Assembly: GCA_000708835.1 (NCBI GenBank)
Contig: DF236984.1
Span: 124,001 to 188,000, forward strand
Source: Klebsormidium nitens
Taxonomy: Eukaryota > Plantae > Klebsormidiophyceae
DNA: 64,000 bases
Reading direction: 5' to 3'
The translations under genes were made by a program, and so were the position numbers. The notes below the pieces were generated by a model, which did not search any database, was not told the origin of the DNA, and saw only the letters and a program-made list of their open reading frames with translations. Of this stretch, positions 8,741 to 63,300 are shown piece by piece; positions within the stretch are counted from its first letter, which is position 1, and the number at the start of each line of letters is the position of its first letter.

Positions 8741-8768
8741 CACAAGGGATGGACACTGGAGTATGTAC

Positions 8769-25681: not shown

Positions 25682-26905
25682 CTAAGCTTGTAGGATGTTG
25701 GCGTTGGGAAAAGAGGTCCCAAGCTGCTTGAACCTGACAAGATTACCAATCTCCAACTTGCTTGTTACCCTAAACCATTGCAAGCGACTGTGAGACACAC
25801 TGCTAGCCTCCGTAAGGTTCAGCAGTTGTAAAAGCCCACTTGAGACTTTCAAAGATGTCAACCTGGGCGGGAGGTGCCCCACGAACACCTCGAATGGCAA
25901 CGTGTCCGACTCGGGCGTAAGCTTTACTTCCCCATCAACAAAGTCAAGCGTCTGGAGCTCTGCACATTGCCTCAAGAGCGGCACCACCTTCACTTGCCAA
26001 TCCCCGAGAGTCTCGACTCCCTTGAAGCACAGATGCTCCAGGCTCAAGGGTTGTGCCCACCGCACCGGGTTTTGAAGCGAGAGGCTTCTCGCATCAATGA
26101 CGACGTTGGCGAGTGCCGGAGTTGCAAGAGCCAAGCGCTCCGATTGATTCTCCAAAGAGACAAGGGACTCAGACTTGATCCGCGCCGCGACTCCAACCTT
26201 GCTGTTAAGTACAAGCTTCTTGAGGGTTCCCGAGCGGATGGAGACAATCTCGGGCTCGTTGCTAGGAGGCCACCGGTTTGCATTCCCTCCTAGTAAGACC
26301 TTGAGCACCTCGATCTTTGAGCATCTCATGAGCAAATGCTCGAGAGCCTCCGGTTGTATGCTGACGCTGTTGAACTGGAGGCTTTTGAGCTGAGAGGGCG
26401 GCCTATTGTGCATGCTGTTGACGGCCGGCACCGCACCCCCCTCGCTAGAGACACTGAGGTGCTCGAGCACCGGGCTTATTAGCACATAGGCTATGAGCAT
26501 CGTGATGTCAAGCTCTGGCTCTCCCATCTTGCCAATAAAGTGGAAGTTGACCCGCTCCGGCAAACCCTCGATCAACTGGGTGGTGAAAAGAACGTGGGAG
26601 GGAACCGCCTTCACCTCGCTCGTTGTCATAACCAGGCTTAACTCTTGAAGGTTAACTTCGGGGTGCTCTAAGAACCTGGCCAGCCCAATGGATTGCTCCA
26701 TATCTCCAAGCTGCCAATTCAGCTTCTTGACCGCCCTTGTTAGCTCCAGAAAACGCTTGCATACACTTTGAGCCCGCACAAAGTCTCTTGCGCTGGTGGT
26801 CACGGCTTGGTCGCCAGTGTTCCGATGCGGGGAGTTGACCTCTGTTAGGACCTTGATGACCAACTCATCAGGCAAGAGCTGGAAGTAGTCTATGTCTGTG
26901 TCCAT
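25682..26905 (-). CDS. Intronless F-box protein with degenerate LRR-like C-terminus
   Basis: Single ORF. F-box motif FQLLPDELVIKVL...RDFVRAQSVCKRF near the start (ATG 26905; an upstream ATG at 27004 is possible), followed by repeated L..L.l segments. Confidence 0.85.
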   Translation of the reverse strand: MDTDIDYFQLLPDELVIKVLTEVNSPHRNTGDQAVTTSARDFVRAQSVCKRFLELTRAVKKLNWQLGDMEQSIGLARFLEHPEVNLQELSLVMTTSEVKAVPSHVLFTTQLIEGLPERVNFHFIGKMGEPELDITMLIAYVLISPVLEHLSVSSEGGAVPAVNSMHNRPPSQLKSLQFNSVSIQPEALEHLLMRCSKIEVLKVLLGGNANRWPPSNEPEIVSIRSGTLKKLVLNSKVGVAARIKSESLVSLENQSERLALATPALANVVIDARSLSLQNPVRWAQPLSLEHLCFKGVETLGDWQVKVVPLLRQCAELQTLDFVDGEVKLTPESDTLPFEVFVGHLPPRLTSLKVSSGLLQLLNLTEASSVSHSRLQWFRVTSKLEIGNLVRFKQLGTSFPNANILQA

Positions 26906-28516
26906 ATCTGCAAAGGGATTGATACATTCAGCTGATTCCGTATTTATTGAAGCTCTCTGAACAAAAATCCGATGAGAGCGCGTTATATTGATGTCTAGCG
27001 CCATGTGATTCTGCGCCAACAATCCTCGCAAGCGCAATCCGCTAACTTGTAGCAAACCCCAGAAAGTGCTGGTGAAGAAAGACACCTCACACAAACTTGA
27101 CAAAGCCTGCTGACTGACATCTGATTTATCTGAACTTCATCAATACAGGAACAGTGACACTTAGGATAGCCTGGGAGTTCAACACCAAGGAGAAGAAAAA
27201 GTTTTTGAGGAGCCTAGGAGAATTCTCATGAGACAGTCAGACCATTCTCTATTCATTTCTAAGGGCAACTGTATTACAAGCTACTCAACATTTACTACAA
27301 GTGTTTGGGGACCTGCGCCCGACAGACTCAGGTCAGGTCTGTCATAGTCCAAGGCAAGCAGGATGCTCCAGACAGAGAGCAATGCAACGCCATTCACTAC
27401 TGTCTACGCTCTATCAATGTTATGTACCATACCCATTGGAAGGTACAACTGACATTGCTTGAAGATATAACCGATTTACAGCATCCTGAGCGAGTTTCTT
27501 GAAAAAGGAAGGCAACAAGCACTGCGGAATTTGAGGAACTCTCACCTGATAATCGGACAATACAGACAATTTTTCTTAAAGAAGGGAGAAACGTTGTCCT
27601 GCTGAAAGCTCTTGCACAGCTCAGGGCTTCAGCTCCCTTTCCCCTTGATGCAGCATGCAGTGCGCCAATGACCTTGCCTTCCAAAAGCCGACCGCCCCCC
27701 CAGCTAGGCCTCTTAATCTGAATCATGCATGAGAAGCAACGAGTCAGGACTCAGGAGCATGATGCAATCGACAAAATGTTTGCCCCGGCTCGCTAGCGAG
27801 TGCGCTGACTCCTTTGTTGATCGTTCCGCTCGCGCAATTTCATATTAGCGAAGGACTAGGCATACCAGTGTAGTCAGGGTAGTCAGGATGCGCGTGAGAT
27901 AAGAGGTAGGTTGTATTGCGCATTCAGAAACAGTTGAGTGCCACGTGGGCCATGTGATCAAAGTCACTGAAGTTGATTGGCCGACGGCCTGACTGCTATT
28001 GTAGGTATCCAGCTCGCAAGTTTCTGCCAGGTACCGGCCAACCAGGCCTTAACAAAAACACATGGAAAGGAATGCTTAGTATCCAACGAACGAATCATAT
28101 AATATCCAATAAATAATTCACATTGTAGCTGAGGGGCAGGCTGCGTGACTGATTTGGCTTCGATCACAAGTTGCAGTAAGTCCGACAGCCCCAAGTAGAT
28201 TGGAGCAAAAGGTGGCTCATGACATAAAGAAGGCTCGACTACGGTCGACTTGACAAAAAATCAGGAAGGCGTTGACAAGGCTAGTTTGGCGATGCACTTG
28301 GAAGCCGCGAACGCTGTCACATTGAGGGACAGAAGGGAGCCCCTCGAGGGGAAGGACACTGTATACGCCTTGACGCAGACATCTTAAAATTGTCGACGTG
28401 ATCTATGCATGCCCTTCGCGCTGGTTGTGAACGAGTTGATAAACTGGCACACCCTGATGGGCCGTCTGTCCTTCAAGTTGACTTGGAATAGGGCACAATA
28501 TGACTGGGATCACAAT

Positions 28517-38500: not shown

Positions 38501-41500
38501 TCGGCCCCCGTGCTTTCCGCTGCTGCGGCAGACCGGCTGGTAGACGCCGCATACAAGAAACCAGTCGTCGAGAGGAGATGGCTTGCGAACCGAGAGCGGG
38601 AGAAGGGGAACGAACTCTTCAAGGTGAGCTCCGAATGGCCACGCCTGGGACGGTACAAACTGTGCTGCTTGGTTAGAGGCGATATTGACTGGAGTCTGTG
38701 GCGAATTGGTTTTGGTACCCATTGCAAAGAACATGGTAAGTCTGTGGTGTTGTCTTCCTCCGGTTTTGAGCGCCATTGCTCTATAGGCGCTCTGCTTCCA
38801 ATCCAGGTTTCACCAGCAGTTTCCTTGGCCGCACGTCGAACCAGCACTCTAGATCTCAATAAGCTGATCTATACTGACCGATGTAAGTTAGCAATTTGCT
38901 GCACAACTTGGCCTCTTTGCAATTGTTTCCAGCTGCATTGTTGAACTTCTTTATCAGCTCTGCCTAAGAACCCAGCCATTCACCGAAGTCGGTCCTCAAT
39001 GACAGGCAACAAATAAGGCAGTGCCCACTGTCGACTCTCGATTCCTTCGTGGGAGATTGGTCTCACGTTGCGGAAGAAAATGGTCGAGAACATGCAGAGT
39101 TCCACAAACGAAGCCTTCGCCTTTTCATTTGCAGAGTAAAGAATACCAGGGCAGCATTGCAGCGTACACGCTCGCGATCCGGCTGCTGCCCTCGTTAGAG
39201 TCCGCGTTCTGCAACCGAGCGGCCGCGCACCTCAAACTGAAGCAGTACAAGGAGGCGGAAGCCGACTGTACGGAAGCGCTCAAGATTGATCCAGGGTACT
39301 TGAAGGTATGACTAGTCTTCGGGGTCGTAGCGGTCTCAATCCTTGTAATTCACCAAAGTTGATTAGCATCACATGTGAAGTGGAACGTCGGGCCTTGGAC
39401 AATACCGTTCCAAGTAGAACGGCGAAACTCCAGGCAGGCTTTGCGCACCAGCTTTCTTATCGCCTCTCCCCTTCTAACAATTCAATCATCCTCCACTTTT
39501 TCACCTTTCGGCACTGCAGCTTACCGATCGCTTCGGTGCCTGAGAAACGCACCCTCTTCAAAGTGCTGATCTGCTCTTTCGTCCGCAGGCACTTCGTCGC
39601 CGTGGCATGGCAAGGCTCGAGCTCGGAAACGCGGAGGGAGCGATCGGGGACTTGGAGACCGTTCAGGAATGCGAATACGACAAGGAACTGACGGAGTTGC
39701 TTCGGAAAGCGAGGGCGAAAGTGGGAAAGAAAGCCGGGGCAGAGAAGCCGATGAGACGGATGCAGATCGAAGAGGTAGAAGAGGAGGAGGGTTCGCCAGA
39801 AACGGCTGCAACGGAACCGGAAGTGAGGCCGGAAACGGAACAGGAGGCTGGTAGAGCTGGGAACGGGCACGTGAGTGCTGCAGCGGAACGGACGAAAGCG
39901 GAAGAGCAGCAGAGAGCGGAAAAGGGCGGAACCAACGGGGACAAGAAACGGATGAATGCAGGATCGACGGGGCCGGAGCATTCTCAATCTCGAGAAACAA
40001 ACGGTGGGGCTCGGAAGGACCCTTCTGAGGCAAGTACGGGGAACGCTGCAGAAGTGAAGACTAAACAGAATGAGAGCGACGGGTCAGGGAAGAAGGAGGC
40101 CGGGTCACCAGTCGTGGAAGCTTCGGGAAAAGATGGGACTGCCGCAAATGGAGGGGCTTCCCAGAAGGAGGCCGACGCAGCGCGGCTTGCAGAGGAGTGG
40201 CGGGAGAAAGGAAACGTGCTGTACAAGCGGGGCGACGTCACGGGAGCGGAGGCCTGCTACTCGCAGAGCCTGACGTACAGCGAAAATGCGGCGGCCCTGA
40301 GCAACCGGGCGATGTGCCGGAACCGGTTCGGGCGGTTCCGGGAGGCGGAGGAAGACGCGTCGGCGGCGATCATAGCGGATCCGACGTACGTGAAGGCGTA
40401 CCATAGGCGGGCGGCCGCGAGGCGGGGGCTGCACAAGAAGGAGCAGGCGATGGAGGACTACAAGGTGAGGAACTAGAGTGGCGGTTCCTTCTGTTGAAAA
40501 TGTTGTTTCTACAGGCATTTGCGGGAAAGCCCGTTCGAAAAGACGTGGTTTGTCGCGTCCGGGTGAGCCGATCCAGCGGTCTCAGGCGGCGGTTGTGCCA
40601 AGACGCCTTGAGGACCGGTAGTTACTTGATCATACGTGTACCAGCGCGCACAATGTCTCTTTCTGCTGATGCAATTGCAGGCGTCGACAGACTTGGTTCA
40701 ACGAGCGCGGATGAATCTCGTGACCTCAGGCTTGGTACACCGCATCTTTGCTGCAAAGATTCTTTGCGACAGCGCTCAGGTTTTGTTTTCAACTTCATGT
40801 AATGAAGGGAGACCGGGCCATGCCGCCTTCTGAAAGCTCAAAGCTGGAGAACTTTGTGGAAAGAGTGGTTGCAAAGGGGAGGTGTACAGGAAGCAATCCT
40901 TCGTGAGAACATCTTCTCAAGCAGGGTTCATTCTGAAGGACAGCGGCGATAGAACAAGCTCCCCTTTTGTGTTTTTAAGTCTGCGTTTGGCGTACAAACT
41001 GCGACCACTTGAAGCATTCAATAATCAACGTAGACTAACACGCTCTCTTCGTTTCAGGTGGTTTTGCAGGCGATGCCGAACAACGTCGGCCTGCAAGAGG
41101 AGATCCGGTCGCTGCAAAGCGAGCTCGAAGACTCCATGTACATTCCGCCGAGGAGAGGGGCGCCCGTCATCGAGGAGGTACGTCGTTGCAGGACAGTACA
41201 CGGCGTCGCTGCCTTTCCTTTTCCACTTTGCTGAGTTTACACAATCTTTCCTGTCGTTGTGTAACATCAGACGTCTGCTGAGGGCTGCGCAGTTTACGGC
41301 AAGTTCTTTCCGCTTGCCCCTTCTTCCCTTCGGTTCACGTGTCCTGTAAATTTCTTCTTTCCTCGTTTTTATCGCTTGTTGTTACTTGGTCCCTCTTTGA
41401 GAGCCTCACAATACATCTTCGCATTATTTCTGGTCCTCAAGAGTGCTCATTGTCAAAGATCCGTTCTCCGAATTCCGGAATCGTTTGTTGTGGCGCCTCA

Positions 41501-44500: not shown

Positions 44501-47500
44501 TATTCCCGACAGCATTACATGCTCGTTGCGGGGACAGCTCTCGTCGACACGTTACCCCGGTTGTTTGGTGGCGTCCCGGAGCCCTTTGATCAGAGGTCGG
44601 GGCTGCCTCTGTTTGTGTAACGATTCATCGGCCCGGCCCACTCACGGTTGGCCGACTAGACGCCAAGCTGGCTAATGTGCATTGAAAGAGCGAGCTTTGG
44701 GACACCGTGTGCTTTCCACGTTGGCGCCCAAACGTCAGGTGTGCATATACCTGCAGCAGTTATGAAGACCACTATTGCTGGCCTTTCTGGCCATGATTCA
44801 TTTCTTGGGGCCTTCCGACGCTGCCTTCTCGAAAAGCTTGGTAGGACCACACCTTGAAAAGCCTGCCTGACATTGCACATTCTGCAGTAGCAGGGATTGA
44901 TCGAGTGGCTTTCTAAATCGTGACCCAACCGTCAATTCAGATGCTCAACTCGTCCAGTCTGTAAGCCCTTCTCTTCGCCCCTTTGCCATCAGTATATCTG
45001 AATGACTCATCAAATCACGTTGCCTTCTCTTGTGCTATGTGTATCCACAGAGCCGCTGGCGAAAGTCCCCTAACAAGGTCTTCGAGGCCAAGCGCAGCTA
45101 CAGAATTGGTTGACGTCACGTGTACTGTTTTGTCTCTCACCGCGATTTCTTTGGCTGAATTCCAGTATATGGGGCAAGGATCTTGTTATTGTTCACGTCC
45201 TTTTTCGAGTAAAGAGGCGGTCACTCTTATGCTTGCACGATCAACCATTATAAGAACGGGTTGTTCGATTCGCATTCTCCAATGCCACTTGCGTTCGATC
45301 GGCATCGACTTCTTAGCGTTCTTCACGTGCATTTGCACATGCGGCGTGTCTGTCTGCACAGCGAGGCGTGTCTATCTGCAAAGTGAGGCGTTTTGTCCGA
45401 AGTCAAGCTTCCAAGGAGACGCTTTAGATCGGAGAAGCAAGTAATTGTGCATCACATTGATGACGGGATGAAGGGCTTTCCTGTTGTTTTGAACTCATTG
45501 AGAGGCAATGAGGACGTCAAATGAACAGACCTTTTGGCCATTTTCCAGTTCAGCAATCCAGATGCCTCCCTTGCGCACCTCCTTTCTCTCCTGGTAAGCT
45601 TCGGGTTTTAACCGGGTGCGATCTTTTCAATGATGACTTTTCAGTAAGCTCTGAGGAGACGCATGTGACATACAAATAGATGCTAGCATTGGTGGGCGCC
45701 GAAAACCTGGAATCTCTCGTAAAAGGAAATTGTGATGTTTGCATATTGCAACTGCAGTAATATTCTGTAGGAAAGTGAGGAGGCGTCACTTTCTCCCACT
45801 TATATGTTGTGCTGTCCAGTCGTCTTGTTTATGAGGGTTCTAAGCGCACGGTTGTACGTCCACATCTCCCGTTTCATATTTTGGGTCCGGACTTGTTCTA
45901 CAGGTTCAAAGTTCCAAGGGGCAATTGCGCGGTACTCGATGATTGTAGCAGGAAAGGCAGGAAGAAAATGACGTGGCACCTATAGCCAGGAATCGATCGT
46001 CTCGTTCTTTCAGATGCTTTCAAAACCTGAAAGATTTTCAGCATTGGCTATTTTAATGTGTCGACCGGACATTTTTATTGCCCTGCCAGATGCTGAAGGC
46101 TGTGCCTTGAAGCTGTTGTCACATGCTGGTGGCCCGTATTTTGGCAAGGGTATTGGAGCTACCTCGCTCTAGTCAACATGCAGTGTTTGCACCGGGTCGG
46201 CTTTGGTGGATCTTTAATGAAGGAGTCTATTTCGGCGTATTCTTGAGTCGGAAGATCCGTGGTCCTTGTGACGCTTTTTTTTCCCGATCGCAACCCCATT
46301 TATCCTTGAATCAAGCGGCTATGTCCCCCAATTTCCATAGTTCCCTTCCGTAAATGGAACGGAATAAAAATGCTAAAGCTTTGTTTATCGGGCCTTGAAT
46401 CTGATGCGTGGTACTTGCTAGATCCTTCATGCGCTCCTTGACAAAACAAGTATTTCAACTTCAGAAATTCAGCTCTAGCAATTTCCTACACCCCTTTCGA
46501 AGCCGCTATTTGACGGCGCACGCCTATCCAGACGGTCGGAAGGCAATCCCAGGAACTGTCAAGCGTACGAAGTCAAGTGTAATCAACAAGACCGTCTGCC
46601 TCTCTTCTCAAGACGTGCTTCTTTCTTTCGCAGGTAGAGGAAGAAGCTCCCGCCGCCACGACACCGGTGCCCCCAAAGCCGGCCCAAAACATGGTTAAGC
46701 CACCCGTTAGCGATGCACGAAAACCTAAACCCAACACCAAGCCAGCGGAACCAGCCAAGACATCTTCTGACGAAAAGCCGGCTTTTGAAGGAGCACAGCC
46801 CAGTCCACGGAAAGCTCAGCGGATTCCGCGGCCCACTGAAAGCATCTCTTCGGACGGAATCCGGCCGGAATCTGACGAGAAGGCGGAGTCCCCGGAAAAG
46901 GTGGAGGAGATGCAAGCGGAAGGGCAGGCTGTGGGTTCGATGTCGAAGGGGCCGGAGCAGGCGGAGGAAGGGGCTTCGTTATCGAAGTCGAAAGAGGGGG
47001 CTGCGCAGGAAACGGAAGAGAACCGGCCGGCAGTTCGGGAGAAGCCAGCACCTAAAGAATCGTTTCCGTCAGTCAGCGCAGAGAAGGAGGTAACGCCAGA
47101 AGAGATTCCTCCCGCCTCGAAGAGTTCCGCAGCGGAATCAGGGCGGAAAGAGGAAGCGGAGCGCGAGAAAGAGGCGGGCAACCGGCTGTTCAAAGCCAGG
47201 GACGTCGCCGGCGCTCTGAAGCACTACTCCCGAGCGATCGAGCTCCAACCGGGCAACGCGGCTTTCTACGGCAACCGGGCGATGTGCTATCTGCAGCTGA
47301 AAGAGTACGAGAAAGTGGTCAAGGACTCCTCCCGGGCACTGGAATTGGACCCGGGATATACGAAGGCGTACTACCGCCGGGCGCTGGCGAGGAAGGGCCT
47401 GGGGCAGTATGAAGCGGCGCTGGAGGATCTGAAGTTCGTGCAAGAGAAGCTGCCCAAAGACAAGCAGGTGAGGAGCAACCTTTGCTGCGAACTGCACTCT

Positions 47501-50500
47501 TCCTTTGGAGTACCTGCGAGTTCCGGGGCGCCTCGGGTGCGACCGTTGAAACTCTGACGAAGTTTGTAAAGGCTTAACGTGGACTTCCCAGCATTCAAAA
47601 GGATTATTTGAGCCTAAGTTTGCCCTTTTGAGTTGCCATGGCGGCAATCTAGCAAGGAGGAGGTCAATCAGCTGGCAGTCGAGCATCGAGTTGCAGATCT
47701 GGCTGCACCGAGAACACTGTCACATGACGAACGGTGAATGAGAATGTTGACACAATTGAGTACTGAGCACGGCTTTGTTTCTTGCTTGGGTTGATCCAAA
47801 GAAGCCAGCAGCTACTTGACTCCTCCTACTCACGACTTCCTCAGCGAAACACTGGCTTCCAGCCGTTTCAGTCACATCCCGCAGATGTTTCGTCTTCGGC
47901 CTAAGCCCGAGACTTTTGAGAGTTCTCAACCCGGTATCGATTTTCCCAAAACACCTTCGCCTAAGTCTTTTGCTATTACATGCCCCAATGAAACGTTTTT
48001 GCAGGTGACGGAGGAGGTCCTCGCTATCACCGACCTCTACATGCGCCGCTTTGAGAACCTGACGTCAGCGCCCCCCGTGTCGTCACCGACTGCTCCGGCC
48101 AGCCGGGAAGCACCGGCAGGGGGCAATAACCCCCAAGGACGTAGCCCCCCGGCGCAAAAGACCACGGAGCCTTCGGTCCCGGCAAAGACGGTTTTGCCCA
48201 CGTGGTTAAAAGAGCAGCTAGCGGAGCAAGTCAAGCAGGGGGCGCTGAAGAAGGACGAGACTAGCGGCGTTCCTGCCCCCCCAAAAAGTTCGTCGGAGAA
48301 CGAGCCTCCCTCGGGGGGGGTGGCGAGAAACGTGGGGTCGCTGACGGACGAGGTGTTCGAAAGCAGGCCGTCCTTCTTCGAATCGAACGGCGGCAAGGCG
48401 CAGTTCAGTGCGGGGAGCTTCGACAAGAAGGCGGTGTCGCCCAAAACCTCCCCCCGGGGTGCTTTGAAGAAGCGGGCATCTCCCCGATCGGTCGTTACCA
48501 CGGCAACGGAAGCGAAGACCCCCCCTAACGAGCCCGAAGAAGAAACACTGGCAGCTACCCCCCCGGAAAAGATTGCCAGAGTACGGGGGGTAGGATCGGT
48601 GGATTCGAAACCGCCGAGTGCGAAACAGGGGGTGGAAACGGCTACTGCTCCCGCCAGCCTGGCAGGGAATGGTGCAAGCCGGGGGGTAGAAAACGGCGGA
48701 CGCGTCGAAGCCGAGGAAGCCCGGCAAGGGGTGGCTGCATCTTCGACGCCGAAAGTTGAAAGGGAGAGTGCGGAAGGGAAGGCTCTGCCAGCGAAGCCGC
48801 GAAGCGCTTTGGAGTTCGAGCGGGCGTGCGCAAGCTTGGGCAAGCCGGAGAGAATAGCTGCCTACCTGCAGGTAAGGTCCGTTCTATCTTTAGACTTGAG
48901 GCCAGGGAGGGTCTGGCTGATGCGCTTTGGAGATTGATTGGTGCTTTAAGGATTAGTCACGCCGTATAGGCCGAGTCTTTGATTACTTAGGGCTGGGTAA
49001 AACCTGGATTGCTTGCCGCGAGAACCGGCCCGGTGTTCAGGTGCCAAGGAAAGCTTCAAGTTTAGTACGTCATATGTTGACCGTTCTGTTTGAAAGTGTC
49101 GCCGAAACCATTCTGAGACACGGGCGGGTTCGAAAACCCTTGAAGTGCCCGGCAACCTTGCCTTGAGCAGCTACGGATATGCCGACCCCTCAGACCCATA
49201 CACGCTTGCAATAGGGCTTTTCCATAACCCGAACACGGACACTCGGTTCTGCCTCTTCTCTCCCCCCCCCCGGGTTGTTGCGGAAGGCGTTTTGCCCGTT
49301 GACGCTGCAAAGATGCAAGCGCTTTTTCCAGCCTACCCAAATCTCTTTTTACTTCGTTGCAATACCGGAACCCGCTCTATATGGCAGTGCCCGTCTGCTC
49401 GACTTTTGGTTTCACTGCTTTCAGTATGTCTGCAGTCTGTCGTTCCAACACTCCCGCCAGGATTGAGAGCTAACCGAATCGGACCCACCCGATCTCAAAA
49501 CTCATTCAGAGGACTCGTCGAAAATCGAAGATGAAAGATCTGTTTGAGCACTGATTCCATTGTGACCTTTCCATGCAGATCGTGGGTCCTGCCAGCTACC
49601 CCTCCATCATCAAAGAGAACTTGAGCGCTGTTCTTATGACCCATATCGGCAGTGCCCTGTCGGCACTCCCGGCCAAGACGTCCGCTGACGTCATGAGCGG
49701 GCTCGCTGACGTCAGCCGCTTCAAGCTGGTCTGGATGCTGCTCCCGCCCGCAACCAAGAAAAGTGAGAGTTCCTGCTTTCCAAATTGAACCATTGTCTTT
49801 TCTGTGATTCTTCTTCTAACACTTCGCGCTTGATCTGCTCATTTCCCTTGGCGTCTTCTAAGTTTTTTCTGTTCCGCTTGTGTTTCTTCCGTCTTCGAGC
49901 GTCCTCGCTTATGGTTTGCACTTTCTTCTCTTCTCATTCGCTGCATGCTCTCAACTCTTGTTTTCCTGATCCTTGGTGTCTAGTGAGGCATTTGAGAGGG
50001 CACTTCTGTGCTCCAGCCGCCAGAAGCGTACGCACCGGATCTCAGCCATTTTTAGTTGTCGAACCCGAAGCTGTAGGCCCTGCACGAATGAATCGTCCCT
50101 CGTTGCCTGCCGCCGCTAGAACCGACAGCTTCGCATTCTCCTCGTCTCTGGAGATCGGACCGTCAGTACCGTGTTTGTTTTGGACTTTCTTTCAAGAATC
50201 TTCTCAGGAGAAGGCAAGGAAGGACGTCTCACGAGAAACCAGGGAAGAACATTTTAATCGACAATTATGAGTCACTGGCCATATCGGAAGGTCCGCTTTC
50301 TTCCTCTACCTGGCTCTACCTGGGTGGCCCACAATCAGAATTCAAACGGTCGGGTTTTTGTTTTTAAAAACATTTTTTTTATTGAATTCAAGTTTCGCTT
50401 TCCAAGTCATTTCCACTTTTTTCCATGTGCAGATTACGCTGCAGCGCTGACGAGGGGACGAACGGAAGACGTGTCTCCGGAGCTTCAGCAAAAAGTGGAG

Positions 50501-51559: not shown

Positions 51560-53763
51560 AGGCTGGTATTATCTTACTATTCCTGAAGTGTTTTTTCTTT
51601 CAATTCTGCATTGCAGACTCCAGAGTTTTTGCCGGTTTCAAGTTTTCAGTAAACTTTACCGGCCTCTGATGGCTGTTGCAGTGTGCACTGTCAGACTTGG
51701 AAGCGTTCCTAGCGACTAGCGTGTAGTACTATTCACCGAGTCAAGCGTGTTTCTGACGGTAGCGTGTTCAACGCAGCAAGAGCGGCGCGATTGGTCGCAC
51801 AACGCAAATACGTGGCCATGCAGGGAATTGTACGGAATTGTTCCTAGGGGGTTCCCACAGCCGCAGGGTTCAGGCCGCACTGTACGGCTGTCCCAACACT
51901 CGCGTATCCAGTCGACACTGCGAACGCTGGGGATCGTCTGCCCTGCATGAAGCATGAGGCGCATGCGAGGAAAGAGCATCATGCAAAAAGATCAAAAAGT
52001 TCTGCCAGTCTGCTGGCATGATTGGCTGCCGACTCCGACAGCGGCCTGGCAATATGGGGTCCTTCATGAAGAACGGCCAAAGTCTGTCCTGAGCTTCGGC
52101 AGCTCTTCTGTCTAATCAGTTGTCTGCGGATTCTCTGCGCATTCTCAGGTGTCACGGATGTCCCTCTAGAGCATCTTTCAGCAAGTCCATCTGCTGCAGG
52201 GGAAAGTGGGGCTGTGCAGGGGAACCCCTTATTGGAACCGCTGCTTACCTGTGGCTCACCACAGTCGAGGAGTTGCAGCATATGATATCGTCCATGGCCC
52301 CGTCCATGGCCTAAATCTGGGTCCTTCTGGTTGGTCATTTTCTGAAGTTTGTGCCTTCTTGATCATACAGTATTTGGGAAACGATGCAACTTTGAAAGAC
52401 TTCGCTTGCTTGCTTGGTAGGTTAGGTCAACAGGAATCAGATTGTTTGCTAAAGAAATAGAAGGAAAATGTCATTCTAGGGGTGTCCTGCCGGTGCCAAT
52501 ATTGGTTAGGGTTGCGATGCCGATAATCAAGAATCGTATCTCGGCAGCTTCAGATTGGTTTGCGCAACAATGTAGAGTTGCATTGTAGCCTTGTGGATGG
52601 CATTGCAGGCTTGCGTCCTGAGGCCCCAAAGACTTTGGCTTCGACTTGTGGACTTGATCACTGGCAAGTGATGATCAGGAAGATTCAGCTACACTCAAAC
52701 TGATGGTACGCTGGTGTTGGGACTCGACAACGACACGTTGTTTATGATTCTTGCAATTGTGGTGACTCATCATGCACCTGTGCTTTTGGTCGCAGGATAC
52801 TCACAGCATACAACAGCCTAGCTGTGCTTAAAGGATTGGCAGCTAGACGTCTATATTAATACAACGTCAGAAGCTGCTCTTGCTTGCGGAGGCATTTGGG
52901 TGGGAGGTGGCATTTGTTTGATTCACAAAGAGGTGAGCTCGGATTTGTGAGGTAGATTCTGAGGATGAAGGAGTCTCATACTTCTCAATTTCATGTTGAC
53001 TAAGCCTCGTTGAGGAAAGGTTCCGTAGCTGTATTGTTGTCCAAAAGCTTGTCGATGTTTGATGCAATCAAGGTGGTGTCCCCCCAGTCATGTGGATGGC
53101 GCGGCGATTTCCTGGGCCCCAACCAGTCCCTGTTTCTTGGCTAGCTTGTTCACTTTGTGGATGGCACTCCTGTCAAAGGCACCCCCTACTTTGCAGGGTC
53201 TCTCTCACATGTCATGGCGTTTCACTGATTGCACGGACTTTGCCTTCATCTAGCTAGCCATGCAACCCCGGAAGATGCCTAGCCGGAAACTAAAGTTCTC
53301 ATCAGGATCAACAGCTCTAGTTTCAACTTGTGCCACTGGCTGGCTGGCTGTCTGCACATCTCAGAAGTTCTCATTAACTTTTCTTTTTTTGGCCTTGAAC
53401 CAAGGGGTGTGCTGCTTTCAAGGGAGTCTGGGCAAATTGGGTCAGGAATATTTCTTGGAACTGCTGCAGATAAGCCAAGAACCTGGCAGGTCGATCGCCT
53501 TTACAATCAATAGGAGCCTAAACTGAAATTGAAGTCTGACATCCACCTGCAATTGATATGCTGTGCACCATTGATATTGTGACACAAAGCTAACTCATAG
53601 TCTGATTAGAATTATAGGCCTTGGTCAGAAATGTAAGTGGAAAATTCCGGGGACTCTAGGGGATTTTCTATGTGTGTTCGAATCCTCAAATTCTTGGTCA
53701 CCTTCAAGTTATTGATGCCCTGAATTGGCTCTTAAACAGGTACAAACCAGTGACCTTTCAAAC

Positions 53764-56700
53764 ATGATGGAGGCGCTATGGACAATGTTCGCAGTCCTAT
53801 TTATCTTGGTGGGCCTATTTGAGGGGAGTTCCTGTCTTACGATGGACCAGGTAGCTAGCCTCGTTCCTGGAGGCTTGGACGCTACGACTGCGCTCAACCT
53901 CAGCTTCCACGGTCTGACCGGGCCCATACCCCCCCAACTAGGTTCCCTGAAAAACCTTCAGCTCTTGGACCTCTCGAACAACCAGCTCTCCGGCCCAATC
54001 CCCCCTGAACTGGGGAATCTGACAAATCTGCGGATCTTGTGGCTACACGTAAATGCCCTGTCGGGGCCCATTCCAGCAGCGCTTGGGGGGCTTGCTTCAC
54101 TAACCACGCTGGCGCTCTTCAACAACAGCCTCTCCGGAGATATTCCCCCCCAGCTGGGAGAGCTGCAGCGGCTCCAGTATTTGGGATTTGCGTCAAACGG
54201 GTTGTCGGGCGTGATTCCTGCGGCTCTGGGGGGTCTTGCCAGCTTGACCTACCTCGACTTAGGTAGAAACTCTCTCATGGGCGCCATTCCCCCCGAGCTT
54301 GGCAATCTAACCAACCTCGAGCACATGTATCTTTCCTCTAATTCCCTATCCGGCCGCATTCCCCCAACGCTTGGCAAACTCACCAAATTGGTCAACCTTT
54401 CCTTGACTGGTGACTACTTCCAGTCGGCCAGTACCAGTCTGAGTGGCCCCATACCCCCCCAATTGGGCGCCCTAGTCAACCTCCGTTCCTTGGGACTTAG
54501 CGGCAACTCGCTTAATGGTACGATTCCGCCAGAATTGGGCCTCTTGCGAAGTTTGGAATACCTGTGGCTGCAAATCAACTACTTATCTGGGGGTATACCG
54601 GACGAGCTTGGTGGCCTTCAAAAGTTGCTCGTTCTCGACATCTCCAAGAACAGGCTGAGAGAGCCTATCGCCCCTGGCATCGGGCATTTTCTGGCACTGC
54701 AGGCTTTAGATCTGTCCAGCAACTACTTTAATGGACCTATCGGGGGGGGAATTGGAAACATCGTCAACCTTGAGCAGCTACGGATTGAGGGTTGCAACAT
54801 TACTGGGGCGATCCCCTCCAGTCTGGGAAAGCTTGTGAAACTAAGAGGGTTGATCTTGCGGTCAAATAGAGAACTCTCCGGACCTATCCCTGCGGAACTG
54901 GGCAACTTAAGATATCTGGAGAATTTGGATCTGGGGACTTGCAATCTAACGGGGACCATTCCGAGGGAGCTCGGTCGCTTTAGTCAACTGACCAGCTTGA
55001 GCCTCATGGAGAACCCGATGCTTTCGGGGCCAATCCCTGAAGAGTTTGCGGCGTCGCCTCGACTCTCTTATGTGCGCCTCAACGGGTGCAACTTGACCGG
55101 GTCGATACCGCAGTGGTTTGGGGAGTTATCCGGGCTAACCCTCTTAGACGTTTCCAACAACCGCCTTTCCGGGCCTATACCGCCCGTTCTCGGCAACCTA
55201 GTCAACCTAACCTCGCTCAGCCTTGCGAAAAACCGGCTGAGCGGTCCCATCCCCCCAGAGATATTCAAACTCGGCCAATTGACGACCTTGGAACTTGGCA
55301 CCAACAATCTTTCCGGCACTATTCCCCCCGGTCTTCGGTCCCTCACCAAGCTACAAACCCTGGCCCTGCAAGTCAATAGCCTCTCGGGGGTGATCCCTTC
55401 GTACCTGGGCAATCTAACCGATCTACGAAAATTGACTCTGGGCGCCAACCGATTGACCGGAACGATACCTCCCGAGCTCGGACGCCTGACCCAGTTGGGC
55501 TATATGGACGTGTCCGACAACAGCTTATCGGGGGGGATCCCTTCGAGCCTGGGTAATCTAAGTGCGCTAGAATATCTGTGGCTGGCCGGCAACCAATTGA
55601 CCGGCACGATACCTCCCGAGCTCGGACGCCTGACCGCACTCATGGTATTGAACTTATACAACAACAGCCTCGTGGGGCAGATCCCACCAGAGCTCGGCGG
55701 GATTGTAGCGTCGGGGTCCTACCGTCGTAATCAACTTCGCCTATCCCTTAGTAACAACCAGCTGTCCGGGCCCATTCCCTCCCAGCTCTTTCCAAAAGGG
55801 GCCTCCTATGACATCTTCGACCTGTCCAACAACAGCTTTTCCGGCCCCATTCCGCCCGAGCTCTCCGATCTCAAATATCTGAGGGACCTAAACGTAGCCC
55901 ATTGCAACCTGACCGGTCCCCTGCCACGGGGCCTTGGCGTCTTCGCAAGCATGATTTTGGAGATCGACGTGTCCCACAACCGCCTCTCCGGTCCCCTGCC
56001 GGACGATTTGGGCGCCCTCAAACGGTGCGGCCGTTTTGACATCTCGAACAACAGCTTCTCGGGGCCTATTCCCACCAGCTACATGGATGGGACGCGCGAT
56101 TCAAGCGGATGGCCGGTAACGGGGCTCGGCAACAAAGTCTTCCACGCCGCCTACAATCGTCTTTCCGGCCCTTTGCCCAGCAACGCATGCGCCTGGGACC
56201 TAGATCTGTCCGGGAACGCTTTGTCGGGGCCCCTTCCCGCTGACCTCGCCACTTGCCTTGCCGCCCGGATGGACCTGAGTGGGAATATGTTCGCTGGCGT
56301 GCCGCCTAAGCCGATTACCTCACCTGAGGTGCTGGGGCTTGACTACCCCCTGCCGGGCTGGTTATCCACCCAGAATATGACCATTATCCGTATGGCTGTC
56401 AACGATCCGCGGGTTTATTCTCTAGACCTGTCGCCACTTTCCGTCAAATGCAAGCTCGTTGAGATCGTTGGCCCCGCCCCCCAGTTGACCAACATCAAAT
56501 TCTGGGACGCTTGCGCGTCCGGTTGCGCGATCAATCTCATTGGCACTGGTGCCAAACTGTCGCGGGAAACGAGGCGCGCAGCTTGCCTTGGCAGGATCTC
56601 GGTCTTTGTGGAGGGAGATGCTCCCAGTGTTGTTGTTCCGTACATCGGCTCCTTCTCGCTTATCCCTTCATATCCACCCTACCTGCAAAATGACCGGGGA

Positions 56701-58223
56701 ACGTACTTCTTTGCGAACGACTCCGACTTCGTCGACAAGATCGACCTGGGTCCGGGCGGCCGCGCATACACGGGCGTCTCCTTTAGCCGCGTCCAGAACG
56801 GAAACCTCTGCCAAAACCCCGAGGCGAGGTACGCGGTCGCTGCCGCTTGGGGAGCCTTTGCGGCTGCGCTGCTCGTTGGCTCCGTTGCTCTTGCGCTCCT
56901 GGCGCGCCGCCCGAAAAAGGAGGGGGGCCCTGGCTGGCTGAGCAAACATTTGCTCTTGGCGAAGTGCGTTGCGGGCGGCTTTTACCTCTGGGGAATTGTA
57001 TCGTCCGTTCTTCCGTACGCCGATTTGTACACGGACGTCGCTGTCTTGAGGGACGTTTGGGGGGCCTGGCCGGCATGGGTTCTTCTCCCGTCGACTATAA
57101 GCCCCTTCGTCATCTCCGGCTATTACGCTGCCAATGCCTGGGCGGCTGGGGGGGGCATTTTCAGCCTGCCAGCGTGCCCCCCATTCCGGTGGGTCTGGCC
57201 TCCCTCCCTCTCCAGCGATAAGTGGGCCTCGAGCATCAGGGCCGCTCCGGTTCAAGGGGTTTCTGCCCGAGCGCTTTTCCTGTGGCCGGTTGCCATGTTG
57301 CGCCTCCCCGGGTTCGACGTGCTAGGTGTTCTGGCCCGGGCCGGGCTGGTCATGCGGTCGGGGGATGCGGTTGCGGGCATGGACGAGTACCTCAGCGCGC
57401 GCGCGCACCTGGACGTGCTGCTCCGCGCGCTCCCCCAGGCGGTCTTTCAGGTGAGTCGTGAATTTGGAAGCTTTGAAGAGTGATTGATTGTGATTGTCCG
57501 GGTTGAGCTATGACGAAGGGATTGAAGGACCGATTTGAAGAGTGTCAAGCGATCGAGGTGCTCTTAAAAGCTGCGGGACGATTGCAATCCTTAATTGTTC
57601 TCCGTTTGACAAGACGCATCGACTGTTTTCGCGTTGAAAGGGTTCTTTCAAATAGGTAGTTAAGGAGGCAAACGAAGCAACAAACTCACTTCGCGTCTTG
57701 TTGAAACGTTGTGCCCATCCTTCGATGCTTAGGTCTTCTGAGTAAGCTACCGAGAGACATTAATTGCAACATATCTCATTCCGAGCCGTTGGAATCATTT
57801 CTCATTCTGCCCTTTGGCCATTGCCATCTCTTTCAATCCTCTAAGGTCTCAAATGCCGGCTAACAGATTCGACGATAAACCTTCTCGAAGCGCCCCCGTT
57901 CTTCCAATGTAAAACCGAGAAGCGACATTCTCCAATATCTGCATTTTTGCTTTGCCAGTCGGTGATCTACTTTCTGGGCAGTTCTCGTGCGACGCGCATC
58001 TACATCGACGTGCGGATCTTCGGCCCCTCCATCGCTCTGTCTCTCGTCTCGCTGGGCGTCTACCTCGGGACCATGTTCTGGGAGTCGCTCAAAAGTGGCG
58101 ACAGGTTCCTGCTCGTCTTCTTGCGCCGGCCGCGCAAGATGCGCGAGATCACGCTCTTCACGGAGGTGGCAGCCCAAGACGGAGGGAGGGAGCTTCTGGC
58201 GTCAGGGAAAGCGACAGGCAGCG
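53764..58223 (+). CDS. Receptor-like protein: signal peptide, about 33 plant-type extracellular LRRs, juxtamembrane domain and multi-pass XK-like membrane module; no kinase
   Basis: Exon 1 53764-57450 (MMEALWTMFAVLFILVGLFEGSSC signal; LxxLxLSxNxLSGxIPxxLG repeats). Exon 2 starts at 57959 and either ends at the GTGAGT donor after 58223 or reads through to the stop at 58462. TM helix starts near 56830, then DLYTD, LRALPQAVFQ|SVIYF and SIALSLVSL. Confidence 0.85.
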
Positions 58224-60364
58224 GTGAGTGGTCGCCTGGAGAAAGCGAAGTTGCAGTCAAACGCTCTTGGATTCCAAGCTGCCATCTTCACTGTGCGCTC
58301 GAAGTTGCTACGTCTTCAAGCGGAAGCCAACACTACATGATGGCGGCAAGCGGTAGGCATGGGCGAGTTAAATTACACGGGGAACTTTGCTCCTTAACCA
58401 CCTGTTTTTTGCGGATGATTGACCGGACGCGAAGTGTGTTACCAGCCCTAATCAGGTTCTGAAGAATGGTGACTTTTCCTGCTGAAGACTTGCTAAGCTC
58501 AAAAGTAACGGTGTGCAGCTCTTGCTATCAAACATGAAGCTGCTCCCTTCAGATTTTAGCAGACGATGGAAGTGCTGTCCTGTCCGGTGAGGCTTCATGT
58601 AGCCAACTTCGATTGTCTGGCATCACTACGCAAGGAGCTATGGGATTGACGCCCAATTCTGAACGGTTCATCATTGTGTCTCTTAGGAAGTGCTGTTCGT
58701 TGGCATGCAATACTGTGGCCCAACACTGACGGCCGAACTCTTCCTAGCTTGTAACAAGGTATTCATAGGAGGATTGAGGCGGCAATGGTTCCCAGCTTAG
58801 TATGAGTCTACCAGCCACGGGTGAAAGGGATGGGTCATCAGAAACCTTTCGCCGGGTTCAATTTCCACTGATTGCCAAAGTTGAAACGAGCTCATGTTCT
58901 GCCTGCAGTCGACATGGCGTAGCCTACTGGTGACCAAGAGAGGAGATCCTGACGCGGTATCCATCTATAATTAAGACCATTCCAAGGTACACCTACAAAC
59001 AACCTATAGCTTTGTCTTCAGTCAACGGCCGCCCAGCCATGCAATTGTTGTCGGTGCATGACTCAGTGATTGCCACTGTCTCTTCAACACACTTCGACGC
59101 CCAATCAGACTTCGAGCCATGCGCTGCTTTCTTATCGATTGGTTGTATTTCGATTCATCCAACGTACTGGAATTCTGTGGCCATGCTTGCGCACACGCCA
59201 GCGATGAGTGCAGTATCCGACCTTTCCGACGTTTGTAATGATCTGCGTCCTATCCTTCAAACAATATGTAACTGCAGTGCTGACAGCACATGCATGAGAC
59301 ACTGATCGATCGATGGCCCTCGTGCCACCTCGCGAGCCTGTCGGGCCATGACGCCCGGGAGCTCGAACCGTCCCGGCGGGCGGGCGGGTGGGCGAGCGGG
59401 CCGCCACCGGGTGACTGGCTCAGTGACTGCAGAGCTTGGCCGGCCCGGGCGCCTGCAAGCTCGTGCTTCAAACTTCCAATGCTTGGTCGTCGGTCCCACG
59501 CACTGCAAAGCTTTAGTATGCAAAACATGCGAAGCGCCCGCTTGGCGTGCGGTGGGTCCAGTCGACCTATAGGGCCCGGGGTGCGGAGTTGGTTGTTTTG
59601 TTTCATGATGCCAGCAGCTAGACAGCGCGTACGGTTCCAGCTCGATCAATGCACTTTTAAATCGAGGGTGGTCTAACTTAAGTTTTACATGATACGCACG
59701 TAACGGTGCAGAGAACATCAAACGTGACGGGCGGGGCGCAACTGAGCTAAGGCCCCCGCCCACATATGGTATATACCGGCAGGCTGGCACGCGTGCCAGA
59801 CGGTGCCAGGCAATAATGTGCATGCGCACCATCATGCATGTTAGAGCACGCCGTGACGATCATACGACTCATCATCAGAAGCCGTTGCCAGAGCTTGATC
59901 AATTGTCGAAAACGGATACATCTACGAACACGTAACAACCTAATATGCATACTATGATTGCCTAGATAGATACGACTTCCTTATGCCGTAGGCAGTGCTA
60001 AGGCTCACACTGTGCTGAAGAAGGCAGGAGCGGATGAAGGCCACTGGCAGGCCAGCGCTGCCGGGCTAGCTGCCCGGAGTGCCACGTTGCAGACCAGAAA
60101 ATCGGCCGACTGGCCCAAGCGGCCAAGTGTCGGGCAAGCAGCAAAGTGCACCTGTTGGCTCGTCTCAATCTACTCCAGCTGCAGGCTAGCCTGTAATCAA
60201 TTGCAGGTCGACAATCTAGCTTTCGTGCTTCAGGCCTCGTGATGACTACGCGGGCGGTAATCTTCTTGGCCACTCTGCACAGGGCTCAACCGTCCGTACC
60301 TTTGTCAAGGAAAAGCATCCAGAACCACCCTACTAAAATCGCCTTGGTGTATCTAACCCCGCAG

Positions 60365-63300
60365 CTAATGATCGAATCTGAAGATGGCAGCGCCTCCCGC
60401 CGGCTTCGAGGCAAAAACTACCGACTCCAAGTCGCCCTCTTTTATGAGACCCCGCTCGACTCTCGACTTGTAGAAGTCCTCCTGCAGAGCAGCATGCGAA
60501 AGACCTGATATCAGCATACGATAAAGACCATCAGTCAACGGAAGACATCGGCGGAAGCAAATATGCACCAGGATTTCTCTGAAATCAGGCGACAGAGTCA
60601 TATCCGCAGATGCGAAGTCACATAGCAACCAAGCACAGCTCTCGGTTGTCTTTTAGTAGACACGTTATTGTCTCGGCTTCTCCAAGTTTTTGGTGATTTG
60701 AGCGGAAGAGCTTCTCCGCTTGAGTAAGAAGCTATCACGGAGGCAAGCAAATGAGAACTTTTTGCTGGGAAGACGACGTTGCGGTTTTGTGTCGCGCGAG
60801 TATTCCGCTCGCAAGACGCAAAATCGCAACGTTGTCGTCCAGGCGACGATCAAGCCCTGATTGTAATAAGGTGACGGCCCCCTTTCACCGGTCAAGAGGG
60901 ACGCTCACCGTCATTAAAAATATTGTTTCACCTGGTATAAAGAAAGCACTTGCTTCTCACTCCAGAAACGCGGTCTCTTACGAAAAGGGAACTTCTTTCT
61001 TGAGGAGCAGAAAGCACACCTCAGGAATCCAGGCTTCATCACAGCTGTCCAATGCTAAAAATGGAAAGAAAAGACGGGCGAATGATCACTGCAAGAAAGA
61101 TCACAAACGAGGCTAGGGGGAAGAGACACAAGAATTCACCTTCAGACTCTCGATGAAACCTGCCACGTGGCCGTCCCTTACGAGCGACACGGTGCAGCCC
61201 CCCCAGCCCGCGCCCGTCAGCCGCGACCCAATCGCGCCGTTCTTCCGACAGACGCCCACCAACTCCTCAAGCTCCTTGCAACTGAAGGGAAGGCAAACGC
61301 GGGTCATTTCTCTGGTTATTGCGGATGATTCTGAGTAGAGCTACGCCTAAAGAGGTGATACCTAGCTTCGTGATGGCGAAAGGGGCTGATTGGAGGTGTT
61401 GGTCGGTGTTTGCGCCGTCCTCCAACAAACGACCACCAACTCCAGCTCCTTGCAACTGGAGGGAAGGCAAAGTGTGAATCCCTACCTTAGAGGTTGCACA
61501 GAATATTCCAACTCAAGCTACGCAATTTAGTGTTTGGTCAGAAGCTTCTTGAAGGTGAAATGAGACGACTGGAAGTGTTGGTCGGTCCTTGCGCCGTCCT
61601 CGGACAAACGCCCACCAGCTCGTTGTGCTTCTTGCAACTGGAGCAAAGCAGAGCATGAGTCCTTTCTTCAAAACTTGCAGATTATGCTGACTCAAACTAC
61701 GCCAACTTGTGTTTGGTCTAAGCTTCGTGAAGGTAAAAGAAGAAGATTGCAAGTGTTGAGTCGGTCCTCTTGCGCTGTTCTTCCGACAGACGCCCTCGAG
61801 TGCCTCAAGCTCTTGGGAATTGACAAGGAGAAGAGTTGAGTTCTGCTGCTTCACATTAGTCTATGTACAGCAGATGCAACCAAGTGAAGTTGTATGAAGC
61901 CCAGCTTAGTAGAGACGGGCAGGGGGCGATGCATGATACATGCTATCTTCTTTCGACTGTCTCTCACCAAACGCCCACCATTTTCTCTAGCTCCTCGTTA
62001 CTGGAGAGAGTACGAAGGACGTAAGTTTTCAACAATTTCCGACTTTTTGAAGAGAAAGTTGACCCCTTTCGGAAGGCAGGGTCCCTGATTGGTGCCTCAA
62101 CTTCTTAAAACTCTCCACGTGGCCAGAGCTCTCGGAGCCGCAGAGTCACCCTATGAGGCCGCTCCGAAAACCGCAACACTGATCTCCAAACACGCCAAAT
62201 CCACTTCATCCGTCGCTTGGCATCCCATATCGCGACTCTCTGACTGCATGCGGCGTCTGTCGAGATGATACAACGTCCGTATGCTACTTCTTGTCTCGAA
62301 AACCTTCCTACAGTAGTCAACGTTTTGAACCCTGAAGTAGCAGCCACGCAAAGATAGGCATTGCAGTGTTCAAACGGCCTGTGAAAGCGGTGGAACCAAG
62401 AGGAGGTTTGTTTACCCACCTGCATTCGTAGAGCTCGCTACAGCTGGCGTGGCTCTCGTTCATAAGCTGTCCCAAGTCCTCCAGAACTTGATCGGACGAA
62501 AAGGACGCCCCGCTGCTGCAAACGGGACACGTGTAAGTTGCTCGGTGTAGAGTCGGTCACATGTGTATGGAAGTAAAGTCCAACACATACAATTGGCGAA
62601 TCCCAGTATTCCAAATTCGCCCTGCCGTTACAGCAAGGTGTGGGCCGGGTAACAAGGCCAGTCAATCGCCGAAACAACTTTTTGGTGCGCCGTACTTTAG
62701 TTGGAGTAATTTGGATCGGTCGTCCAGCCCAGTGCTTGTGCCAACCACTTTTTTCAGGATCGTTGGTAACAACCAGAGTGGGGGAGGGCGTGCCACGTGG
62801 CACTCTCTCGCAGGCTTGACAGATATGATGCAGGGGTAAAGGAGGCTCTACTGAGAAGCGCGTCCTACGAGCTGCCGTTTCAAGTCAGAGAATCCAAAAG
62901 AGCACGGAGACACATGGTTGATACGGGGCAGGAAGCGCGAGTGTAAAACAGCTCTCGCTGACCTGGATTGTGCACGCGCCGCGGTGTCCCGGAAGGCGTA
63001 GACGCGCTCCTTTTCGCTGAAGACGTGCTTGGCCCTCTGCGGAGCGGTCACTTTTCGCGTGATCAGTATTCTTGAGGAATGGTGCAAAATATGCAATCAC
63101 AACGGCGCCGTCCGCTCAGGAAAAGAAACTCAGTCTCTGCGAGTTGGTCACGAGGAGTGGTTGTCTACATGACCAAAGGAGTACACGGGGGAGTGTAAGC
63201 TGTGCAACGGAGCTCTAGATCGAAGCGCAGACAAGGCGCGGACCCCGATGCTGTTAGTTTAATGCGGACGAGTGGCAGATTCTAAAAGCGCAGGAAGCTT

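Follow-up and report, generated by a model that had tools for sequence, protein, structure and literature searches.

Leucine-rich repeat (LRR) receptors at the surface of plant-lineage cells are known to signal via their own kinase or via that of a partner. What may stand in the place of the kinase in such a receptor is the question raised by a gene of the streptophyte alga Klebsormidium nitens, on the forward strand of contig DF236984.1 (assembly GCA_000708835.1). The gene lies in a 64,000-nucleotide stretch (contig positions 124,001 to 188,000) that was analysed as a whole and is here called the window; all coordinates are window positions. It encodes a receptor-like protein with a signal peptide, about 32 LRRs, a cysteine-containing domain, a transmembrane helix (TM0), a single membrane module and a basic tail of 46 residues, and it has no kinase. 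The fold predicted for the module is that of the N-terminal repeat of the XK-related (XKR) proteins, the family to which the scramblase Xkr8 belongs. For the locus as a whole we lean towards the explanation that it encodes an LRR receptor in which a half-XK module replaces the kinase.

A kinase-free LRR receptor gene

The receptor region contains a single long open reading frame (ORF), 53725-57483, with the coding sequence starting at the ATG at 53764. Between this ATG and the last upstream stop there is no other in-frame ATG, and in-frame stops are present upstream. The surrounding genome is eukaryotic and intron-containing, with a G+C content of about 50%. The transcript model is based on contigs from four public runs (four studies, two organism labels), compared over 5,901 bases. 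An identical spliced RNA, made up of a leader and exons 1 to 3, was found in all four runs, and all three of its introns are GT..AG. Although the RNA nature of the runs was only guessed, their contigs skip GT..AG introns and are therefore derived from RNA. The stretch with the receptor gene is present in 18 runs from six studies. The transcribed features are as follows.

52897-52932, + strand: 3' end of a non-coding spliced 5' leader exon (consensus of loose-end contigs in four runs; donor GAG/GTGAGC at 52932/52933)
53740-57450, + strand: exon 1, residues 1-1229 (contigs from 53734 to 57447 or 57450 in four runs)
57451-57958, + strand: intron 1, GT..AG, 508 nucleotides (nt), phase 0, within module helix 3 (joint in four of four runs)
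57959-58223, + strand: exon 2, with the end of helix 3, a conserved loop, helix 4 and most of the basic tail
58224-58908, + strand: intron 2, GT..AG, 685 nt, phase 1 (joint in four of four runs)
58909-59055, + strand: exon 3, with the remainder of codon 1318, three codons (..VDMA), the stop TAG at 58920-58922 and the 3' untranslated region

The last 30 letters of the leader place uniquely at 52897-52926, and the contigs bear about 500 nt upstream of exon 1. The original prediction, made from the letters of the window alone, had proposed the intron at 57451-57958, and the spliced contigs of the four runs bear this out. It had also ended the gene at 58223; this position is the end of exon 2, and the coding sequence continues to 58920-58922. 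Translation of the spliced form gives an intact protein of 1321 amino acids that ends in ..KATGSVDMA.

The absence of kinase motifs had likewise been claimed, and it holds for the whole window. Neither the HRDxKxxN nor the DFG pattern occurs in any of the six frames of the 64 kb, Pfam gives no Pkinase match for the window protein, and transcripts from four studies run from exon 1 to the stop at 58920-58922 without a kinase. A downstream kinase exon is ruled out by the spliced transcripts together with the missing motifs in six frames.

Some further contigs and a related gene bear on the gene model. In run X1, low-depth contigs cross both introns (57450-57985 and 58194-58937) at a depth of 4-10 compared to 48-76 for the exons, which suggests unspliced RNA, intron retention or carry-over of DNA. 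Retention of intron 2 would lengthen the ORF to a stop at 58460-58462. High-depth contigs from the same run match just short conserved pieces of the gene (55972-56006, 56734-56756; 54057), namely an LRR and the AYTGV motif described below, and then diverge; one of them shows up as a false 'joint' of 727 nt with TT..TC ends. These contigs look like transcripts of expressed paralogues and not like isoforms of the receptor gene. The gene of the relative P0001 (10001-12343 of L002, a JGI metagenome contig of 61,658 nt) has an uninterrupted ORF across the position of intron 1, so this intron is missing from that gene, or its loss or gain took place within the family.

The signal peptide, the extracellular LRRs and the transmembrane helix of the original prediction are all present. 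The ectodomain is composed of three parts.

53764-53835, + strand: signal peptide, residues 1-24 (hydrophobic N-terminal segment, Kyte-Doolittle 2.12)
53848-56331, + strand: plant-type LRR array, about 32 units of 24 residues with two irregular islands (Pfam, repeat spacing)
56332-56820, + strand: juxtamembrane ectodomain, residues 857-1019, 163 amino acids with 5 Cys (family sequences, per-domain identities)

Pfam matches on the window protein are to LRR families only (LRR_1, E=3.4e-85; LRR_8, E=2.4e-49). Between residues 65 and 833 the LRR pattern recurs at a spacing of 24 residues, with 22 strict or 27 relaxed matches; one more relaxed match, the 28th, falls inside the signal peptide at residue 9. 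About 33 repeats had been claimed. The array itself is confirmed, and its spacing implies about 32 units. A unit of 144 nt, equal to two LRRs, is present in 2.2 copies with 77% identity at 55374-55685 (Tandem Repeats Finder); here a recent duplication within the array has made the ectodomain longer. Searches of Pfam, PDB sequences and the ESM Atlas gave no match to the juxtamembrane domain. It ends just outside the membrane with the near-invariant AYTGV.F.RVQ.GNLC.NPEA. In comparisons with seven other family members its identity is 34-61%, while that of the membrane module is 36-64%; it is usually conserved no less than the module. It may be a coupling or ligand-proximal element.

A HMMER scan of 1.84 billion representative proteins with residues 1023-1229 found 33 family representatives (clusters at 50% identity) at E<=1e-3, 19 of them at E<=1e-10, the best being 58% identical. 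In the full-length hits the order is the same throughout, with an LRR array, the juxtamembrane domain, TM0, the module and a tail of 40-60 residues, and the LRR arrays differ in length and sequence from member to member. The conserved multigene family that the original prediction had named as possible support exists, in 33 clusters sharing the unit of juxtamembrane domain, TM0 and module. Such a constant unit under varied LRR arrays suggests a receptor family with a common output. All members with an organism name are from K. nitens (seven GAQ accessions) or K. subtile; the others come from metagenome or run assemblies. Two of the K. nitens members were automatically named 'LRR receptor-like serine/threonine-protein kinase FLS2' despite lacking a kinase. 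The window protein retains 51 of the 54 module columns that are conserved at 75% or more, and the window holds one copy only of this receptor design. A word-indexed protein search with the C-terminal region of the window protein returned nothing at E<=1e-3, so the gene's own product with its present C terminus is apparently missing from that collection. The same kind of search with the family profile returned just three family members and no XK protein. We conclude that the gene is intact and expressed, and that it belongs to a multigene family in which every named member comes from Klebsormidium.

Resemblance of the membrane module to XK-related proteins

After TM0 the protein continues for about 275 residues with five further helices, as seen from hydropathy, the structural model and conservation.

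56833-56904, + strand: TM0, type-I helix, residues 1024-1047 (hydropathy; helix 2-34 of the model, predicted local distance difference test, pLDDT, 94-96)
56950-57048, + strand: module helix 1, about residues 1063-1095, XKR TM1 equivalent (models, conservation, XKR alignment ranges)
57061-57141, + strand: module helix 2, about residues 1100-1126, XKR TM2 equivalent (models, conservation)
57142-57378, + strand: long loop between helices 2 and 3, with a WxWP motif, predicted beta-strands and a hydrophobic helix (DSSP of two models, conservation)
57379-57450, + strand: module helix 3, first part, residues 1206-1229, XKR TM3 equivalent (conservation; continues to residue 1235 in exon 2)
Exon 2, + strand: conserved loop G-S-S-R-A-T-R-I-Y-I-D, residues 1236-1246 (conservation)
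Exon 2, + strand: module helix 4, about residues 1247-1275, XKR TM4 equivalent (conservation)

A basic linker (RRPKK...) on the cytosolic side connects TM0 to the module. Helix 1 bears D1087 and D1091 (DxxxD), and a conserved W-P-x-W-V motif opens helix 2. The hydrophobic helix in the following loop (about residues 1169-1194) contains the invariant D1185. Helix 3 is hydrophilic and was not flagged by the hydropathy scan; it carries R1213, D1217, R1221, the invariant P1224, Q1225 (in 20 of 21 sequences) and the invariant Q1229. At position 1217, 18 of the 21 family sequences have an acidic residue (D or E), and the residue that follows PQ is not Leu in the window protein. After helix 4 there is only the short tail of 46 residues, with the basic stretch RRPRKMR. 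The motifs quoted in the original prediction, YADLYTDVAVL, WPAWVLLPSTISP, EYLSARAHLDVLLRALPQAVFQ (continued after the intron by SVIYF) and FGPSIALSLVSL, are all found where it had placed them.

These features recall what has been described for the XKR proteins. XKR9 consists of two related repeats, each with four spanning helices and an inner-leaflet helix in the loop after the second one (PMC8298096). Its TM3, which is kinked at a conserved PQL, was too hydrophilic to be detected by hydropathy analysis, and the family as a whole retains acidic residues on TM1 and TM3 (PMC8298096). Scrambling by Xkr8 needs D26, D30, K134, E137, E141 and R183, and the helices involved, alpha1, alpha4 and alpha5, belong to its N-terminal half (PMC8500837). 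The spacing of D1087 and D1091 equals that of D26 and D30, and the spacing of residues 1217, 1221 and 1225 equals that of E137, E141 and Q145; what supports these equivalences is the spacing, together with the stretches covered by the Pfam and fold alignments, and not a residue-level alignment. The loop helix at 1169-1194 would be the counterpart of IH1, the inner-leaflet helix of XKR cytosolic loop 2. Provided that this helix is re-entrant, the ectodomain would lie outside, TM0 would run inward, helices 1 to 4 would be arranged as in XKR proteins and the basic tail would be cytosolic. With this topology the module, like the XKR proteins, would start on the cytosolic side, and the conserved loop 1236-1246 would lie outside and adjoin the juxtamembrane domain.

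Three lines of evidence, from profiles, from folds and from language-model features, support the XK reading. With Pfam, one of the 21 family modules, that of the most divergent member P0013, matches PF09815 (E=3e-4, 20.3 bits). Its module residues 51-250 align to positions 3-174 of the 337 in the profile, which is the first half and is in register with the fold match.

For the fold, AlphaFold models were compared with 48,161 representative PDB chains with no Foldseek prefilter. The first model covers residues 478-780 of P0001, the closest complete relative (57% identical in the aligned module), with TM0 and the five further helices (pLDDT 82, predicted template modelling score, pTM, 0.79). Its ranks 1-3 are taken by rXKR9 (7p16_A, Z 10.8, root-mean-square deviation 3.5 A over 157 residues), hXKR4 (9boj_B, Z 9.5) and hXKR8 (8xej_X, Z 8.7), and residues 7-203 of the hXKR8 chain are covered; below them come Piezo repeats and generic helical proteins. 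The second model, residues 262-533 of P0013 without TM0 (27% identical to P0001, pLDDT 79), has XKR9, XKR4 and XKR8 as the sole chains at Z of at least 8, aligned to residues 4-190 of rXKR9 and 7-180 of hXKR8. With both models the match (Z 8.1-10.8, 148-161 residues) is to the N-terminal repeat only, and both show the fold of the XKR N-terminal domain, that is TM1-TM2, the inner-leaflet helix and TM3-TM4. In a second look, five of five XKR entries occupied ranks 1-5. The argument from fold is made because the same small family takes every top place twice, and not from Z alone. Foldseek with the second model listed XKR4, XKR9 and XKR8 entries at ranks 6, 25, 37 and 40, with the highest TM-scores of its list.

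The third line concerns the window's own module (residues 1048-1229), for which 34 of the 40 nearest named Atlas clusters carry PF09815 (score 0.91, 207 of 256 features). For P0001 the count is 27 of 40. The original prediction had asked whether another membrane family would match better; none does, and XKR entries lead both fold rankings. Matches of members to PAP2, SID-1, RSN1_TM and PycTM are single, weak (E 0.011-0.089) and scattered, and were set aside as noise. Lower scores than those of the XKR entries were obtained for Piezo repeats, TTYH, pannexin and soluble four-helix bundles, which were taken as generic helical matches. A search of the ESM Atlas by shape with both models returned unrelated bacterial enzymes (TM<=0.31).

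The Atlas neighbours are themselves worth a remark. The nearest clusters with PF09815 are short (110-203 amino acids) and come from Foraminifera, Euglenozoa, Cnidaria and Mollusca, and another close cluster, from Haptophyta, bears no common Pfam family. XK-like proteins of one repeat, or fragments of them, may occur widely beyond the vertebrates.

Several points weigh against reading the module as XK-like. The window protein and its C-terminal pieces have no PF09815 match in Pfam at E<=1. The score of P0013 is below the gathering score of the profile (24.8 bits), and the other 20 of the 21 modules are unmatched. The family profile found no chain among the PDB sequences at E<=10 (hmmsearch), and phmmer with P0013 found no XKR chain there. 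With neither model did Foldseek reach E<=0.001 against the PDB; its E-values were above 0.1. Z values of 8-11 can be reached between unrelated helical bundles, and below about 13 may reflect a common helical arrangement. The two models were drawn from overlapping alignments of one family and are not fully independent, and they are models of paralogues and not of the window's own complete module. The position that corresponds by spacing to Xkr8 E141 is an Arg at residue 1221 (the 21 sequences, with the window protein among them, have Arg 12 times and Glu 8 times), and the third hydrophobic helix, read here as re-entrant, may be spanning. Each of the three lines is below its own significance threshold. 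Of the replacement of the kinase by an XK-like module, as originally proposed, the architecture and fold ranks 1-3 agree with the claim, while the PF09815 match of the window protein and a significant Foldseek hit did not appear.

The same points could favour another explanation, in which the module is a lineage-specific four-helix bundle that is unrelated to XK and has converged on a similar fold, serving as the anchor or platform of an RLP-like co-receptor or wall sensor that uses partner kinases. Plant LRR receptor-like proteins (RLPs) without a kinase do signal through partners, and helical bundles can attain the Z values observed. However, three methods of different kinds agree on the XK family and on the same half of it. 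Moreover, polar or charged positions within the membrane are conserved (D1087, D1091, D1185, R1213, P1224, Q1225 and Q1229), which would be unnecessary for a passive anchor. We therefore consider convergence unlikely. Because the evidence is of three kinds and agrees on family and half, the module is probably distantly homologous to the N-terminal domain of XK-related proteins. It falls outside PF09815 itself, as it reaches neither the profile threshold nor the two repeats. As the original prediction had noted, only one XK-like repeat is visible, and the transcripts end 46 residues after helix 4; the relatives end likewise.

Possible modes of action

Starting from a half-XK module in place of the kinase, a tentative and rather doubtful proposal is that the protein is a kinase-independent sensor-effector, in which ligand-driven pairing of half-XK modules switches on lipid handling. 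Ligand-induced dimerisation is the usual action of LRR ectodomains, and XKR8-Basigin and XKR4 change their oligomeric state upon activation. With its single repeat and its even number of spanning helices, the module would allow two chains to lie parallel in an arrangement like that of the two-repeat XKR fold. In this proposal, binding of a ligand at the LRR array would join two chains, and their modules would then pair side by side as the two XKR repeats do. The pairing would assemble or open a lipid path, resulting in scrambling or in local remodelling of the bilayer. The signal would pass from the outside to the module by way of the juxtamembrane domain and the conserved loop that joins helices 3 and 4. 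A still bolder version, which we regard as unlikely, is that these proteins form a receptor class of their own, an LRR sensor with a lipid scramblase as direct output, where two half-XK modules complete an XK-like unit and lipid asymmetry changes without any kinase.

The XK resemblance could also mean something other than scrambling. XK binds the PH domain of VPS13A through a beta-hairpin in its second cytosolic loop (PMC9436381). The algal module may by comparison be a docking site for a VPS13-type bridge-like lipid-transfer protein, with the LRRs serving to tether this site to the wall or to an adjacent cell instead of gating scrambling through a ligand. In both models the loop that links helices 2 and 3, with its conserved WxWP, has predicted beta-strands, but the parallel with the XK hairpin is drawn from these strands and their position, not from sequence, the confidence of the models is lower in this loop (pLDDT 56-75) and the side on which it lies is inferred; we find this role improbable. 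It is even harder to see the module as a receptor-channel that forms a pathway for ions or small solutes rather than for lipids. The buried acidic and polar residues in TM1 and TM3 would suit such a pathway, and the authors of the XKR9 structure noted that its acidic cluster distantly resembles a divalent-cation site (PMC8298096), but no channel family ranks above the XKR entries in the fold or profile matches and no pore is evident, which makes a channel very improbable. That the gene is a mis-modelled LRR receptor kinase or a pseudogene can practically be dismissed, as the automatic FLS2 names of its relatives are countered by transcripts that stop and relatives that end (40-60 residues past the last helix) with no Pkinase match or motif in sight, and by an intact ORF that keeps the conserved residues of the family.

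If half an XK protein does replace the kinase, the output of the family would be a scramblase-like module, through which an alga near the origin of land plants would control its membrane lipids directly. The XK field would gain a single-repeat version of the fold with the half that contains the scrambling residues of Xkr8, and, if the mechanism is correct, a natural minimal single-repeat XK scramblase fold outside animals. The analysis also corrects the names of relatives listed in databases as FLS2-like receptor kinases, which have no kinase. The original prediction knew of no described receptor class with this architecture, and none was present in the literature searched. Nothing there links XK-related proteins with Klebsormidium or with LRR receptors; the sole co-mention of 'XK-related' and 'Viridiplantae' is in an SLC survey where the two terms are unrelated, and one survey of plant cell-surface receptors makes no mention of Klebsormidium or of scramblases. 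As far as we have searched, the parts (plant LRRs and the XK fold) are known, and the novelty lies in their combination, in the form with a single repeat and in its presence in a streptophyte alga.

Elsewhere in the window, two ORFs on the + strand, 39607-40476 and 46667-47557, match TPR_1 (E=6e-11 and 2.4e-17); they may belong as exons to a single TPR gene or to two, located upstream of the receptor. On the - strand, an ORF of 473 amino acids at 25682-27103 has a weak match to PF24758, F-box-associated LRRs (E=2e-4, 21.5 bits, cut-off 27). The G+C content falls to 0.34 at 8001-10000, compared to about 0.50 elsewhere, and long ORFs overlap there on both strands (8854-9630), one of them without a Pfam match; this stretch is possibly an AT-rich insertion or a transposon remnant. 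Downstream of the receptor gene, a 179-nt unit is present in 2.1 copies with 76% identity at 61391-61768.

Comparison with known receptors and XK-type proteins

The protein resembles the LRR receptor-like kinases (RLKs) in its signal peptide, its 24-residue plant LRRs (LxxLxLxxNxLsGxIP) and its type-I orientation, and differs from them in the lack of a kinase. With the LRR-RLPs it shares the signal peptide and the extracellular plant-type LRRs. RLPs, however, have one transmembrane helix and a short tail, whereas here a conserved multi-helix module follows TM0. Like RLPs and RLKs, the algal proteins form a multigene family in which LRR arrays of varied length and sequence sit on a constant membrane-proximal unit; their juxtamembrane ectodomain, on the other hand, matches no known domain.

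Compared to the XK-related proteins (XKR8, XKR9, XKR4, XK and CED-8), the algal module has a DxxxD in helix 1 and a hydrophilic helix 3 with a conserved PQ, which may correspond to the features of XKR TM1 and TM3. Those proteins have two repeats (eight transmembrane helices and two partly inserted ones), whereas the module has one (four transmembrane helices and one inserted helix) and scores below the curated cut-off of PF09815. It also seems to lack the caspase-cleavable or phosphorylated regulatory tail and has a short basic one, with no second repeat to plug. It is, furthermore, fused through an extra transmembrane helix to a large LRR ectodomain, and it is found in a streptophyte alga.

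XK proteins are known to work with partners. Kell and XK form a pair joined by a disulfide link. In Xkr8-Basigin/Neuroplastin, a multipass XK protein is combined with a single-pass glycoprotein that has a large ectodomain and whose transmembrane helix packs on the XK protein (PMC8500837). In both pairs the chains are separate and the ectodomains are of the Ig or peptidase type, whereas in the alga LRRs, TM0 and module are one polypeptide. The fusion of TM0 and module thus recalls in cis what Basigin-Xkr8 and Kell-XK are in trans, and the algal module would already be fused to the type of ectodomain-bearing, single-pass partner that XK proteins recruit. A last comparison is with the unrelated semiSWEET and SWEET transporters. 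Half-size membrane proteins such as semiSWEET work as dimers of one repeat, and the algal module is likewise a single copy of a repeat that is elsewhere duplicated in tandem. With such a protein, the minimal unit of scrambling and its control by a partner helix and by dimerisation become testable.

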